A stretch of 64,000 bases of DNA, from the NCBI RefSeq assembly GCF_011386835.1, contig NC_088807.1, forward strand, positions 26,164,001-26,228,000. The letters are read 5' to 3'. The position numbers and the translations under genes were made by a program. Shown here one piece after another: positions 243-58,900 of the stretch; the first letter of the stretch is position 1; each line of letters opens with the position of its first letter. The DNA is from Chrysemys picta bellii. Lineage: Eukaryota. The notes under the pieces are model-generated. The model saw only the letters and a list, made by a program, of their open reading frames with translations, was not told the DNA's origin and did not search any database.

Positions 243-3200
243 CTGAGGGGGGAGGGGAGAGAGCACCTGAGATGGGGGAGCCACTGCCCCCCCCCAGGGA
301 CCCAGGCATCCGGGCTCCCATCCCTCCTCCCCCACCCAGGCCAGGGATGGGACTCAGGCGTCCGGGCACCCATCCCTCCTCCCCCACCAAGCCAGAGATG
401 GGACCCAGGCGTCCGGGCTCCCCGCCGGGGATGGGACCCAGGCGTCCGGCATACCGGTACCGAGGAAGAGCACCTCGTAGCGCCCGTCGGCTGCCTGGGC
501 CAGGTCGACGGCCAGCGTGGTGAAGCCATAGGGGAGGCCGGCGCGGACCAGCAGGGGGCGCCGCGGCGCCGGGTACACGGGGTCGTACATCAGCGGGTGC
601 GAGCGCACGAACATCACCAGCTCGTCTGGGAACTCGCGTGTGGAGCCCAGTCCCGGGGTGAAGGCGCCGCCCGGGCACTGTGGGGAAAGAGCGGGAGAAC
701 CCAGGCGTCCGGCCCCGGTCCCAGCCCCACCCCCTCCCAGAGCCGCCGCCCCCCGGCCCCCACCCCCTCCCAGAGCCGGGGAAAGAACCCAGGCGTCCAG
801 CCCCAGCCCCACCTCCTCCCAGAGCTGGGGAGTGAACCCAGTCGTCCGGGCCCCCAGCCCCCACTCCCCTCCCAGAGCCGGGGAAAGAACCCAGGAGTCC
901 TGGCCCCCAGCCCCCCCCTGCTCTAATCACCAGCCCCCACTCCCCTCCCAGAGCCGGGGAAAGAACCTAGGCGTCCGGGCCCCCAGCCCCCACTCACGGC
1001 TCCGGGGCGGGGGTAGGGCACGCGGCCAGTGTAGGGCACCCACTGGTAGCTGCGCCCCTCTTTATGGGCGAAGGGGCCGTTAAACGCGCTGCGGATGGTG
1101 TTCAGGGGGTACACGCAGACGGCCGAGCCCCGGAATACCGACCTGGGGGGGACAGGGGGATTACAGACTGCCCAGCCCCCCTGGGGTCGCCCTGCCCCGT
1201 CCGAGACCCCACCCCCAAATCCCCAGCCCCCCCAATGCCCACCCCAGCCCCCCGACTCACCCCAGGGTGGAGAACAGCCCGTACACATGGGGGTTCTTCT
1301 CGTCCTGAGTCGGCAGCAGGAAAACGTCTCCTGGAAAGGGGGGCGGGGAGGAGATGAATCACATATAGAACCCAGGCGTCCGGGCTCCCTTCCCATCCCC
1401 CACTGCTGTAAGCCACTCCCTGCCCATAGCTGGGGAGAGAACCCAGGCATCCTGGGCCCCCCTCCCATCTGTGACCTTCTTCCACACCCTGTATTCAGCC
1501 CCCCGCCCCTGTGACTGGCTGCACTACTACGGTCCCCGCTCTGACGTCTGCCTGGATGAAAGCTCATAACCCGCTGAACATCAGTGTCCCAGGGAAACAT
1601 GCGTGGTGACCTCAGCCGTGGGGTGAGACGTTCCCTGCCCGCGAACGCGGCTGGGACCTGCCCCAGAGCCAGAGGGAAAACGTCAGTGTTGCCCCGGGGC
1701 CGTCCCCAGACCTGACTTGTCCTGGCTGGCGCAGTCGGGACTAGGAATTTGCGGGCGTTCGGCTACGGCTCAGACTGAGCCCTGGGGAACGTCCCTGCCC
1801 CCCCCGGCCCCCCCCGGCTCACGCAGCTCGTCGAAGAAGGTCTCCACTCCATCCTCGCCCATCACGGAGCAAACCAGCCGGGCCTTCAGGAACGTCGTCC
1901 ACTTATTGACCAGGGCCCGCTGCCCGCCGTCGTCGTTCTGGGAGAGACACAGGGGACAAGGATCAGCTTGCCCGGCACCGAGATGCAGCCGCCTCTGGGG
2001 CGGAGCCCTCGGGAACAGCCGCACAGAATGCTGCATGGGGATGGCCCGCCTGGGGCAGAGATGCAGCCACCTCTGGGGCGGGGCGGCTGGGGAGCAGCTT
2101 GGGACAGGAAGTGAAGAAGATGCCTGTTATTGACTCAAACTGGAGTGGAAGTTTCAAGAGGCCGAACGGGCCCCTCCGAGCTGCAATTCGGCCCGGACAC
2201 CAGGGTTCAATCCCTGAATTTCAGGGGGGGGGGAAGCCAGGCTGGGGAGTTAGCCCCTGACTGCCAGGGGAGAGCGCCCCCTGCCCAGCCCCATGCCCGG
2301 ACCCCCGGCGCCCCCTGCACGACACTCACCAGACAGACCCGGCCGACCCGGGCCAGCACGCCGGGCCCCACGGCGCCCTCCAGCGCCCGCTCGCGGAAGA
2401 AGAAATAGAGCTTGTCGTCGCTGCGCTCGGAGCTGTCCGGCACCACGTGGGCCCGGAGGAAAACGGGGTCTGGGGGGGAGGTGGGGGCGGAGCCAAGGTG
2501 AGTGCAACGCCCGCGTCTGCCACAAGGGGGCATTGCTAACCCAGAGCACCCCCCGGCCCAGCCAGCGCCCCTCACCCCCGACCTGCAGCCCTCCCAGCTC
2601 CCCCGGCGCCCCTCACTCCCGACCCGCAGCCCTCCCAGCTCCCCTGGCGCCCCTCACTCCGGACCCGCAGCCCCCCTGGCCTGGCCCCCCTGGCCCAGCC
2701 ACTGCCCCTCACTCCTGACCTGCAGCCCCCCCGGCCCGTTCCCCCAACACCCTTCACTCCCGGCCCCCCCGTACCATGCAGCCAGCGCGAGTCGTACTGC
2801 TCCGTGCGCACGGCCGGCCGGGGGCCCAGGGTGCGGAAAAGTGCCGCGTCGGTGCCCATGAAATCCACGTGCAGCCCGGCGTAGAGCGTCCCGTCTGCGG
2901 GGCAGGGGGGGCCGTGAGAGGGGGAATGAGACCCCCCCACACACACAGAGCAGCCCCCGCCCCCGCAGAGGGACAGACAGATTCTGGCCCCCCGTAATGA
3001 AGTGGGGGGTTCTCTGGGTTTTGTCACTGGTTTGCACGCCGCGGGGGTGGGACTCGGTGTCCCTGGTTTAACGAGGGGAGAGGAGAGGGAGTTCGTTGGG
3101 ACAGACCCGGAGAAGGAACTTGGGACCCCGGCCGATGGCCTGGAGAACAGAGACCCCAGCGACTGGTGACCCAGAGTCACAGCCGGTTCTGGCCAGTGGG

Positions 3201-55900: not shown

Positions 55901-58900
55901 CCGCAGGCCGGTTCTCCCGGCTCGTCCTTCCGGAACGGTGGGCCCCGGACGTGGGATCCCGGCCGCGGGCGCCCCAGGGCCAGGTCCCGAGTGAAATGGC
56001 CGCTCTGCTCCCACGCAAGAGTCCCCCATTTGTGCCCCCCAGGGTGGGGTGGGCCCCGTCAGGGCAGGGCAGTGGGGAGCCGCGGGGGGGGGGGGGGCTG
56101 CCAGAAGGGGGCGCTGGCCCGGTGCGGGCTGGGCTGCGGGACATGGGGCCGGCCGGGGGGGCGCTTGGGGTGCTGGGAGAGGCAGAGCGTGTTGGGGGCG
56201 GCCGCGGGGGACCAGGGGGGTAGATCTGTCCCCCCTGATTCCCGCTCCCCCCCAGACTCAGAGCAGGTGAAGCGGGCGGCGCTGGACATGAAGGAGGAGG
56301 AGCTGATCGGCGAGAGGACCGAGGCCTTTACCACGGCCAGGAACCTGCTCACCGCGGCTGCCGACGCCGCCGAAAGAGTCATGGCCGCCTACAAGGAGGT
56401 GAGGGGGTGCCCGGACGCCTGGGTTCTCTCCCCCGCTCTGGGAGGGGAGGGGGCGGGGGGGCTGGGAGCCCGGACGCCTGGGTTCTCTCCCCTGCTCTGG
56501 GAGGGGAGGGGGCGGGGGGGCTGGGAGCCCGGACGCCTGGGTTCTCTCCCCTGCTCTGGGAGGGGAGGGGGCGGGGGGGGGCTGGGAGCCCGGATGCCTG
56601 GGTTCTCTCCCCCGCTCTGGGAGGGGAGGGGGCGGGGGGGCTGGGAGCCCGGACGCCTGGGTTCTAACTCCCTGCCCCGCAGGTGACGGAGCTGGCCGGT
56701 TACACCGCCCGGGTCTATGAGATGTTCCATGTCTTTGAGGACGTGCAGCGCGGGCGCTTTGCCCGGCCCGGCGAGGCGGAGGAGGGCGGGGACCAGGCCA
56801 TGGCCGCCATGAGACACGGGGTGCGCGTGGAGGGGCCCCTCAGCATTCGCGGTGAGCCGGGGGCAGCCATTTTTGTGGGTCCCGCTAAAATGGGTCTTCT
56901 CTGAAATGTGTGTGTGTCCCCGTGCCCCCCACTGGAGGGGAGGGGCCCCGCGCCCCCCCCCGTGTGTGTGTCCCCGCGCAGCTGCGCCCCCTGCTGGAGG
57001 GGAGGGGCCTTGCCATTAATTCTCTCTCTCTGCCCTCCCCCCTTTGCCTCCGTCCACCCCCAGGCCGGGTCGTGGATGTGGAAAATGGAATCATCTGTGA
57101 AAACATCCCAATTATCACCCCCACCGGGGACGTGGTGGTGGCCAGCCTGAACCTCAGGGTAAAGGGGAGCCCAGGGCCGGGCTGGCAGGGGCTGCGGGTC
57201 GGGAGTGAGGGGCACCGGCAGGGCTGGGGGGCAGGGGCTGCGGGTCGGGAGTGAGGGGCACCGGCAGGGCTGGGGGGCAGGGGCTGCGGGTCGGGAGTGA
57301 GGGGCACCGGCAGGGCTGGGGGAGGGGGCAGGGCTGGGGGGCAGGGTCTGCGGGTCGGGAGTGAGGGGCACCGGCAGGGCTGGGGGGGGCAGGGCTGGGG
57401 GGCAGGGGCTGCGGGTCGGGAGTGAGGGGCACCGGCAGGGCTGGGGGGCAGGGGCTGCGGGTCGGGAGTGAGGGGCACTGGCAGAGCTGGGGGGGGGGGC
57501 TAGGGAGCGAAGGGGGCTGAGGGAGAGGCTGTGGGGGGCGCTGGAGGGGGCAGAGCCAGCGGAAATCGGGGGAGTGGGGGAGCTGGGGGGCAGGTTTCCC
57601 CCTCTGCCCCCCTGCAGGTCGGGGGGGGGTGTCTCACGTCTCTCTGGCTCCCCCTGCAGGTGGACGGGGACATGCATCTTCTCATCACCGGCCCCAATGG
57701 CTGCGGGAAGAGCTCCCTGTTCCGTATCCTCGGGGGCCTCTGGCCGGCCTACGGGGGGGTCCTCTACAAACCGCCCCCCCAGCGCATGTTCTACGTCCCC
57801 CAGAGGTGCGGGCAGCCCGGACGCCTGGGTTCTCTCCCCGGCTCTGGGAGGTGTGTGGGGGCCGGTGGGTCAGCGCAGGGGGGCCCGGCAGTTTGTTAAC
57901 CCCCCATGTTTCCCGTAGGCCCTACATGTCGGTGGGCTCCCTGCGGGACCAGGTGATCTACCCCGACACCGCCCAGGACATGGCGCGGAAGGGGCTGACG
58001 GACGCCCACCTGGAGCAGATTCTCAATGTCGTCAGCCTCAACTACATCGTCCAGCGGGAGGGAGGTGGGTGCGGGGGCCATGGGGGGATGGGGCAGAGTG
58101 GGGGGGATGGGGTGGGGGGCCATGGGGGGATGGGGCAGAGTGGGGGGGATGGGGTGGGGGGGCCATAGGGGGGATGGGGCAGAGTGGGGGTGATCAGGGC
58201 AGGGGGACCATGGGGGGATGGGGCAGAGTGGGGGTGATCAGGGCAGGGGGGCCATAGGGGGGATGGAGTGGGGGGGCCATGGGGGGATGGGGCAGAGTGG
58301 GGGTGATCAGGGCAGGGGGGCAATGGGGAGATGTGGTTGGGGGGCCATAGGGGGGATGGGGCAGAGTGGGGGGGATTGGGTGGGGGGCAGGGGGTGATGG
58401 GGGAAGAGCTAACCCCCCCCCGAGTGAATGACCAATGAGGCATCTTCTTCCCCCCGCGGGGGCGGGGCCAGGCTGGGAGGCCGTCAGCGATTGGAAGGAC
58501 GTCCTGTCGGGGGGTGAGAAGCAGCGAATGGGGATGGCCCGGATGTTCTATCACAGGTCAGTGACCCTCCCCCCGGGATGCCCCTCCCCCCACGTGGATT
58601 CCCCCCTCCGCCCCCCTGCGGCTGAGTCCCTGCCCCCCCGGGGGGGTGATGGGGGAGGGAGTGGGAGGACAGGGCGGGGTGGTAGCTGCTCCCCTTGCTG
58701 CCAGGGGGAGGTGCTGTGGGGTTGGGGGGAGTTGGCTCAGGGGGGCTGCCCCCCCCAGCCTCACGTCTGCCCCCCAGGCCGCAGTACGCCCTGCTGGACG
58801 AGTGCACCAGCGCCGTGAGCATCGATGTAGAGGGGCGCATCTTCCAAGCCGCAAAGGATGCTGGGATCTCGCTGCTCTCCATCACCCACCGGCCCTCACT

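Follow-up and report, generated by a model that had tools for sequence, protein, structure and literature searches.

Introns in a 64,000-nucleotide stretch of the painted turtle genome (Chrysemys picta bellii, contig NC_088807.1, positions 26,164,001 to 26,228,000; hereafter the window) carry tandem arrays of a short unit that resembles the transfer RNA (tRNA)-like head of a MIR/CORE-type short interspersed element (SINE). All 13 arrays found within mapped introns read in the sense orientation of their host genes, and in 10 of the 11 introns concerned an array adjoins a splice site. On balance we lean towards the account that an unstable SINE-head minisatellite fills short introns up to their splice signals, and that antisense copies are purged near splice sites. 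We infer this growth process and this selective filter from the anatomy, orientation, placement statistics, splice-mimic asymmetry, age, and copy-number flux of the arrays, each of which is shown.

Orientation, placement and splice-signal content of the arrays

GC content is very high in the window (60-80% along most of it), which holds the minus-strand genes PPP1R3F, GPR173, TSPYL2, and a semaphorin, then BCAP31 (minus strand) and ABCD1 (plus strand). In semaphorin, TSPYL2, BCAP31, and ABCD1, 27 introns were mapped, all of them GT..AG. The exons of TSPYL2 were placed with orthologue proteins, and the TSPYL2 exon is 95-98% identical to emydid proteins. The exons of semaphorin, BCAP31, and ABCD1 were placed by reading frame, GT/AG dinucleotides, and Pfam coordinates, and their junctions are thus sequence-predicted. 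Pfam matches to Bap31, ABC_membrane_2, and Sema lie on the expected strands, and the profile coordinates break at the junction of ABCD1 exons 1 and 2 as well as at the two ends of semaphorin exon 11.

The 13 intronic arrays occupy 11 of the 27 mapped introns, namely semaphorin introns 1 (two arrays), 2, 4, 8, 10, and 11; TSPYL2 intron 2; BCAP31 coding intron 2; and ABCD1 introns 1 (two arrays), 3, and 6 (Table 1). Nine arrays lie in minus-strand genes and four in ABCD1, and the strand of the arrays switches exactly where the strand of the genes switches, between BCAP31 and ABCD1. The sole antisense match in the mapped introns is a weak fragment in semaphorin intron 7, which is found in Malaclemys as well. 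The probability of this agreement in orientation is ~5e-4 when introns are taken as independent units and 0.06 (two-sided) when genes are the units. The initial annotation of this DNA had counted more than 12 sense loci in five genes. Within mapped introns the number of genes falls to four, as the PPP1R3F copies are only probably intronic, and the arrays at 17540-19186, which had also been read as intronic, lie in non-coding DNA between GPR173 and TSPYL2. It had further held that antisense copies occur only outside introns. Three plus-strand copies were indeed found where it had placed them in the minus-strand region, each of them single (1-1.4 units), with two intergenic and one just past the PPP1R3F stop codon; the weak semaphorin intron 7 fragment is the one exception.

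Arrays begin 0-12 nt past the donor GT in seven introns (semaphorin introns 2, 4, and 10; TSPYL2 intron 2; ABCD1 introns 1, 3, and 6), and all seven donors for which such starts had been claimed are thereby confirmed. Semaphorin intron 11 provides an eighth donor-near case, in which the array begins at 29 nt by profile and at ~5 nt by eye. At the opposite end, arrays lie 15-34 nt from the acceptor in semaphorin introns 1 and 8 and in BCAP31. Under a null model of random placement inside each intron, with 15 nt reserved for the acceptor, an array 12 nt or less from the donor is expected in 3.9 of the 11 introns and was found in seven (P=0.005), while an array adjoining either splice site is expected in 5.4 and was found in 10 (P=8e-5). 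Short introns thus account for part of the donor proximity and not for all of it. The comparison with random placement favours donor proximity in the window, with the qualification that three arrays sit at the acceptor end.

The first unit past the donor is usually truncated at its 5′ end, starting at profile positions 21-37 in seven of eight cases, and in six of six cases the last unit before the acceptor terminates within the pyrimidine-rich B-box stretch (positions 55-64). In ABCD1 intron 3, the TTCTAAC and the pyrimidine tract ahead of the AG come from the last unit. In TSPYL2 intron 2, the donor GTGAGAGC is colinear with the GTTAGAGC of the unit, and the acceptor tract is the pyrimidine run of the unit. 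Branch-point-like TTCTAAC and the accompanying pyrimidine tract look unit-derived in these two introns and in others.

For the content of splice-like signals, donor and acceptor matrices were built from 27 real sites, and 3961 bp of arrays were scanned in both readings. Of acceptor-like sites whose score is no less than the lower quartile of real acceptors, there are 0 in the sense reading and 26 in the antisense reading. Simple sites consisting of a pyrimidine tract and YAG number 11 in sense and 36 in antisense, and CTRAY branch-point motifs number 1 and 31, respectively. Given this asymmetry in acceptors and branch points, an antisense array beside a real splice site would therefore offer a row of decoy 3′ splice sites. 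A related bias has been described for human SINEs, in which Alu elements are biased to the sense orientation 20-200 bp from exons, within 'hazardous zones', and this has been ascribed to antisense copies being selected against for their strong cryptic acceptor signals (Zhang, Romanish & Mager 2011, PMC3088655). The sense excess near splice sites is common to both systems, and the asymmetry in the window is of the same kind. However, the human elements are whole dispersed copies that are depleted less than 100 bp from exons (PMC3088655), whereas the turtle arrays are tandem, consist of heads only, adjoin the splice sites, and fill introns.

The strand and donor pattern is not SINE-specific, since a 46-bp G-rich minisatellite family, unrelated to the SINE head, obeys the same strand rule and starts at donors. 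This family lies on the minus strand in semaphorin intron 6 and two BCAP31 introns and on the plus strand in ABCD1 introns 5 and 9, and it starts ~5 nt past the donor in BCAP31 coding intron 3 and ABCD1 intron 5. ABCD1 intron 7 begins with another G-rich repeat. Among the intronic tandem arrays that are not of the SINE family, the sense strand is G-rich in 11 and C-rich in 3-4.

Other painted-turtle loci were fetched through relatives of a gag-like open reading frame (ORF) in the window, which is described below. In a RING/PA-domain gene on another chromosome, four of four intron arrays are in the sense orientation, and they begin 33, 23, 194, and 33 nt past their donors. This gene repeats the strand rule and the donor adjacency, and only partly the regularity of phase at the donor. 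Two painted-turtle Ig-like loci (GC 0.5-0.6) each contain one 2-unit antisense array inside the called gene span, and an alligator FOXP3-like gene span contains three sense and three antisense arrays. Antisense arrays are tolerated in these longer, less GC-rich called gene spans, and the sense rule, strong as it is in compact GC-rich genes, does not hold everywhere. Fetched DNA that has no called gene also contains arrays, of 6 and 12 units (L010, 5725-6138, plus strand; L008, 7618-8519, minus strand), so arrays expand outside annotated introns too.

Origin, age and turnover of the repeat unit

A 22-nt core motif of the unit has 51 matches at no more than three mismatches in the whole 64-kb window, where 0.02 are expected. 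A profile of the unit, built from 26 copies and yielding a 74-bp consensus, has 72 matches at ~24 loci of the window. Tandem Repeats Finder (TRF) delimits arrays with a period of 52-90 and 2-10 copies, in which the units are joined head-to-tail and the profile matches are contiguous. By the same program, the variants of the unit differ among arrays and include 53-, 52-, 59-, 74-, and 90-bp forms. The arrays in the window consist of heads only, with no CORE body or tail derived from a long interspersed element (LINE) inside them. Tandem amplification of a ~70-bp unit that lacks the CORE body, as originally proposed, is thus borne out. By the look of its sequence, the part of the unit at positions ~14-30 (GGTTAGAGCAGGGGGGGCTGG) resembles half of a CTCF-like motif. 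Searching the literature for the core motif gave no result.

A-box-like and B-box-like motifs occur within the unit and are arranged in SINE-head order, and the unit looks like the head of the MIR consensus. ARAGORN found no tRNA genes in the window, arrays included, and Rfam, searched at the gathering score and again with E values up to 10, gave no tRNA match to the unit and returned chance miRNA-like matches only. The label 'tRNA head' therefore rests on the box-A-like and box-B-like motifs and on the resemblance to a SINE head. A CORE-like CTCAGTTTCCC motif (54129-54146; an 18-mer with three mismatches) follows the array at 53964-54109 in the same orientation, and this pair, which is only suggestive, would be the only head-to-body junction found. 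The CORE motif was found at three sites of the window and was absent from the fetched loci L001-L005, and aligning the three CORE-bearing stretches with MAFFT gave a poor and unconvincing result. In a mobile MIR/CORE-SINE, a CORE body and a LINE-derived tail would follow the tRNA-related head, and the arrays differ from it in having heads only.

Tandem repeats of SINE portions, termed sSats, have been described in squamates (Vassetzky, Kosushkin & Ryskov 2023, Mob DNA, PMC10702118). These often comprise the box-B part of the tRNA-related head, have units of 67-150 nt in arrays of modest length, and arose independently at many loci from Squam1-3 SINEs, with a subtelomeric link (PMC10702118). 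The arrays described here share with them a similar unit size, modest arrays, and many independent loci, and their unit, too, would be made from a SINE portion. In contrast to the subtelomeric sSats, for which introns or orientation are nowhere mentioned in the text of PMC10702118, the turtle and crocodilian arrays have a MIR/CORE-like head as their putative source, occupy short introns of compact genes, and are in the sense orientation.

The comparison of introns across species covered those whose flanking exons fall in the fetched DNA. The order of the CBM_21 gene (PPP1R3F), GPR173, TSPYL2, and semaphorin, on one strand, is found in the fetched Malaclemys, Gopherus, and Chelonia loci, and GPR173 and TSPYL2 were seen at the Pelodiscus locus. 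In Malaclemys, Gopherus, and Chelonia, semaphorin introns 1, 2, 4, 8, and 10 hold sense arrays whose relative positions match, with 3, 8, and 7 profile matches, respectively, in intron 4 and 7, 4, and 3 in intron 2. Arrays orthologous to the loci at 17540..19186 are likewise present in other turtles. Introns free of arrays shrink to only 87-106 nt in Gopherus and Chelonia, which suggests that the baseline intron size is small.

TSPYL2 intron 2 is made of units in five of five turtles, with two units in Chelonia and ~6 in Gopherus and the emydids. In Pelodiscus, this intron (L004, 11718-13880) holds ~2.2 kb of a derived repeat with a ~110-bp period that comprises the B-box part only and gives 17 degenerate part-unit matches. 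The orthologous intron contains ~3 units flush with both splice sites in alligator and, in a skink, a single decayed sense unit in the middle of the intron, and in a crane it is ~100 nt long and G-run-rich with no recognisable unit. Judged from these sequences, the insertion in TSPYL2 intron 2 is older than the turtle-archosaur split and probably older than the split from lizards. The comparison of skink, crane, alligator, and turtles also suggests that orientation was set by ancient single insertions and that the flush ends came later, through growth of the arrays in turtles and crocodilians. Intron gain by insertion of the SINE was considered and ruled out, as the intron positions are common to species without arrays. 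A Pol III/TFIIIC function was set aside as well, as none of the present observations speaks to it.

Explanations for the orientation and position of the arrays

In the account towards which we lean, an old MIR/CORE-type SINE would have inserted long ago into short introns, and its tRNA-like head would then have been copied in tandem in the GC-rich compact genes of turtles, with a copy number that keeps shifting. The growing array would overwrite the unconstrained part of the intron until it meets sequences needed by splicing. Arrays would thus come to lie flush with the donor and halt at the branch point or pyrimidine tract because growth stops at sequence that splicing requires, and in several introns the pyrimidine tract at the acceptor limit of the array would be the unit's own B-box stretch. 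The orientation bias would be mainly a survival filter. A sense unit, being G-run-rich and almost without acceptor-like sites, would be at least harmless and possibly helpful, and an antisense unit, with its CTAAC-type branch point and several sites of pyrimidine tract plus AG, would misdirect splicing near real sites. The non-SINE family would show the same rule because such a filter acts on any G-rich minisatellite.

Several observations weigh against this account. The sample is small, drawn from five genes, and the arrays of one gene are perhaps not independent events, as the by-gene probability reflects. The acceptor matrix comes from just 27 local sites, some of them unit-derived. Semaphorin intron 3 (4672-4412) and TSPYL2 intron 4 (13412-13336) are strongly C-rich in the sense reading (skew ~-0.5), so pyrimidine-rich sense sequence is not forbidden per se. 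The hosts of the antisense arrays are candidate gene models, comprising the alligator FOXP3-like gene and turtle Ig/SCAN chimeras that are dubious. Finally, antisense single copies outside introns have stayed unexpanded for more than 100 million years while sense copies grew, an outcome that does not follow from a survival filter alone.

An alternative, which we regard as unlikely, is that the sense arrays are kept as working intron sequence, with G-run enhancers (acting through hnRNP H/F or RNA G-quadruplexes) at the donor and the B-box run serving as branch point and polypyrimidine tract. The polarity of the unit, in its truncated first copies and its B-box-terminated last copies, fits the polarity of the intron, and units run from donor to acceptor in ABCD1 intron 3 and TSPYL2 intron 2, the layout of the latter being common to alligator. 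Over the 27 introns, the G content of the first 60 nt is 40-56%, and G-quadruplex (G4) motifs number 65 in sense and 22 in antisense, with a sense G4 motif within the first 100 nt of 13 introns. The G-runs of the arrays lie on the RNA strand less than ~100 nt from a splice site, as in intronic splicing enhancers. In short GC-rich introns, G4 motifs and G-runs past the 5′ splice site are known to serve as enhancers. They are enriched there on the non-template strand of short introns (PMC9065059), and motifs rich in G function as intronic enhancers where GC-rich introns have weak pyrimidine tracts (PMC2481429). Introns of the window have the same strand asymmetry, whereas the enhancers of those studies (PMC9065059; PMC2481429) are short motifs and not transposon-derived arrays. 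However, introns without arrays are nearly as rich in G-runs, with 4.8 at +7..+76 past the donor as against 6.0 beside arrays, and the donors beside arrays are no weaker, with consensus matches of 6.50 as against 6.26 elsewhere (P=0.85) and no preference for weak donors. Any G-rich repeat behaves alike, copy number varies several-fold between species, the orthologous crane intron is ~100 nt long and has no recognisable unit, and the regularity of donor phase recurs only partly in the RING/PA gene. Of the splicing-enhancer idea first attached to this repeat, the presence of G-runs near donors thus survives, and the idea itself is undercut by the similar density in array-free introns, by the strength of the donors, and by the non-SINE repeats. 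A dedicated SINE-to-splicing-element system is not shown.

Less probable again is a stronger version of this idea, in which the SINE head would have become, by domestication in turtles and crocodilians, a polar, self-renewing 'intron cassette' kept by selection for more than 250 million years, its sense units giving the donor G-run enhancers and its B-box run giving the branch point and polypyrimidine tract.

To a similarly improbable alternative belongs transcription-linked expansion, which had also been suggested in the initial annotation. The G-rich non-template strand would form R-loops or G-quadruplexes that lead to slippage and unequal exchange, and only sense heads would grow, with antisense copies staying single and decaying. 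In the minus-strand part of the window, each of the three plus-strand copies is indeed single (1-1.4 units), the copy at 8892-8941 is single in other turtles too, and several unrelated G-rich minisatellites in these introns are also sense. However, antisense arrays of 2-3 units in called gene spans (three of the six arrays in the alligator FOXP3-like span, and two painted-turtle loci) weaken this proposal, as do the arrays of 6 and 12 units that stand in unannotated DNA on either strand. The antisense single copies of the window are, moreover, intergenic, and their small size may reflect location and not strand.

It is more doubtful still that the strand agreement is largely non-independence or chance, with local duplication or conversion spreading ~five independent events, for although the by-gene probability is only 0.06, the minus-strand genes are contiguous, and the cross-species copies are all orthologous and add no independent events, array strand flips exactly with gene strand at BCAP31/ABCD1, an unrelated gene on another chromosome has 4/4 sense arrays, the arrays carry different unit variants, and the placement statistics are independent of orientation.

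The principles to which the filter and its alternatives appeal are already known, namely the sense bias of SINEs near exons (PMC3088655), the enrichment of G-runs and G4 motifs (PMC9065059), and G-rich enhancers (PMC2481429).

Features of the window and meaning for turtle introns

The copies of the SINE head and of the 46-bp family are listed in Table 1.

Table 1. Copies of the SINE-head unit and of the 46-bp G-rich family in the window, with their strand and their position relative to splice sites.
Feature	Position	Strand	Remarks
Array filling semaphorin intron 11 (454-243)	298..454	-	Partial first unit directly after donor GTATGC
53-bp-variant array filling semaphorin intron 10 (997-678)	694..994	-	3 nt from donor, 16 nt from acceptor
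Copies at acceptor end of semaphorin intron 8 (1822-1331)	1365..1462	-	34 nt from AG
Array of 4.6 units, semaphorin intron 4 (4291-3884)	3955..4286	-	5 nt past donor
Array, semaphorin intron 2 (5160-4736)	4833..5156	-	4 nt past donor GTAAGG
Array at acceptor end of semaphorin intron 1 (6793-5322)	5337..5517	-	15 nt from AG
Array in the middle of semaphorin intron 1	5862..6048	-	
Array filling TSPYL2 intron 2 (14236-13753)	13759..14242	-	
Three loci between GPR173 and TSPYL2, non-coding	17540-17589 (weak), 18175-18432, 18940-19186	-	
1.5 units, sense and probably intronic, located upstream of the last PPP1R3F exons	30724..30798	-	
Single head copy, PPP1R3F region; probably intronic	35097..35162	-	Preceded by CORE-like motif, 35264-35283
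Array at acceptor end of BCAP31 coding intron 2 (43094-42387)	42416..42647	-	29 nt from AG
~10 units opening ABCD1 intron 1 (52952-54658)	52964..53720	+	12 nt past donor
52-bp-variant array, ABCD1 intron 1	53964..54109	+	CORE-like motif on 3′ side
Array making up 94% of ABCD1 intron 3 (56399-56682)	56404..56671	+	
~1.5 units forming ABCD1 intron 6 (57806-57918)	57803..57853	+	
Single unit, intergenic, semaphorin-TSPYL2	8892..8941	+	Single in other turtles too
Single unit, intergenic, between PPP1R3F and GPR173	26937..26982	+	
1.4 units antisense to PPP1R3F, 10-70 nt past end of last coding ORF (29278); probably 3′ untranslated region	29208..29266	+	
Weak antisense B-box-variant fragment, semaphorin intron 7	2191..2228	+	38 nt, E=9e-4
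46-bp family, last BCAP31 intron, sense	40049..40724	-	
46-bp family, BCAP31 coding intron 3 (42238-41919)	41981..42224	-	Flush with donor
46-bp family, ABCD1 intron 5 (57159-57659)	57200..57499	+	~5 nt past donor
46-bp family, ABCD1 intron 9, sense	60002..60722	+	

Three further tandem repeats were noted. At 43623-46243 (minus strand), a 34-bp repeat in ~58 copies, whose BCAP31 sense strand is strongly G-rich (skew 0.72), probably fills the intron in the 5′ untranslated region (UTR) of BCAP31. A 2.4-kb complex minisatellite (9069-11519, plus strand; periods 32 to 355) occupies intergenic DNA between semaphorin and TSPYL2 and is G-rich on the strand opposite both flanking genes. In the interval between GPR173 and TSPYL2, a non-coding 86-bp satellite (19483-21294) has 21 copies that are 95% alike and show no strand skew.

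Among the genes, GPR173 was missing from the gene list of the initial annotation; it is an intact, single-exon ORF for a GPR173 (SREB3)-like receptor of ~373 aa, at 22228-23352 on the minus strand between PPP1R3F and TSPYL2. For PPP1R3F, only the C-terminal exon was recognised, with a hydrophobic tail, and the gene model is incomplete here. Antisense within the PPP1R3F region (32150-34700) lies the gag-like, Gypsy-type ORF mentioned above, which encodes 458 aa that include both a SCAN domain and a zinc knuckle of the CCHC type (32687-34060, plus strand) and has direct repeats on either side (~31953-32487 and 34217-34741). Its relatives occur across turtle genomes and are annotated as 'uncharacterized' or as chimeric genes. 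An AT-rich island between BCAP31 and ABCD1 (47640-49585 and 49821-50499, both plus strand) holds transposase-like ORFs and a LINE reverse-transcriptase-like fragment; Pfam gave no match for the ORF at 48815-49585. The assembly gaps at 39048-39547 and 46773-46915 are crossed by no array and no mapped intron, and the BCAP31 3′ UTR extends into the first of them.

For annotation, many short introns of turtles and crocodilians are nearly one repeat family, masking of which can hide splice sites, and their length is unstable between species. Should the functional reading be true, a transposon fragment would have been recruited wholesale as intron-definition sequence. If instead the survival filter is true, these arrays would provide a clean non-mammalian case of splice-signal mimicry deciding the orientation of repeats inside compact genes, and minisatellites, not dispersed transposons alone, would be subject to it.

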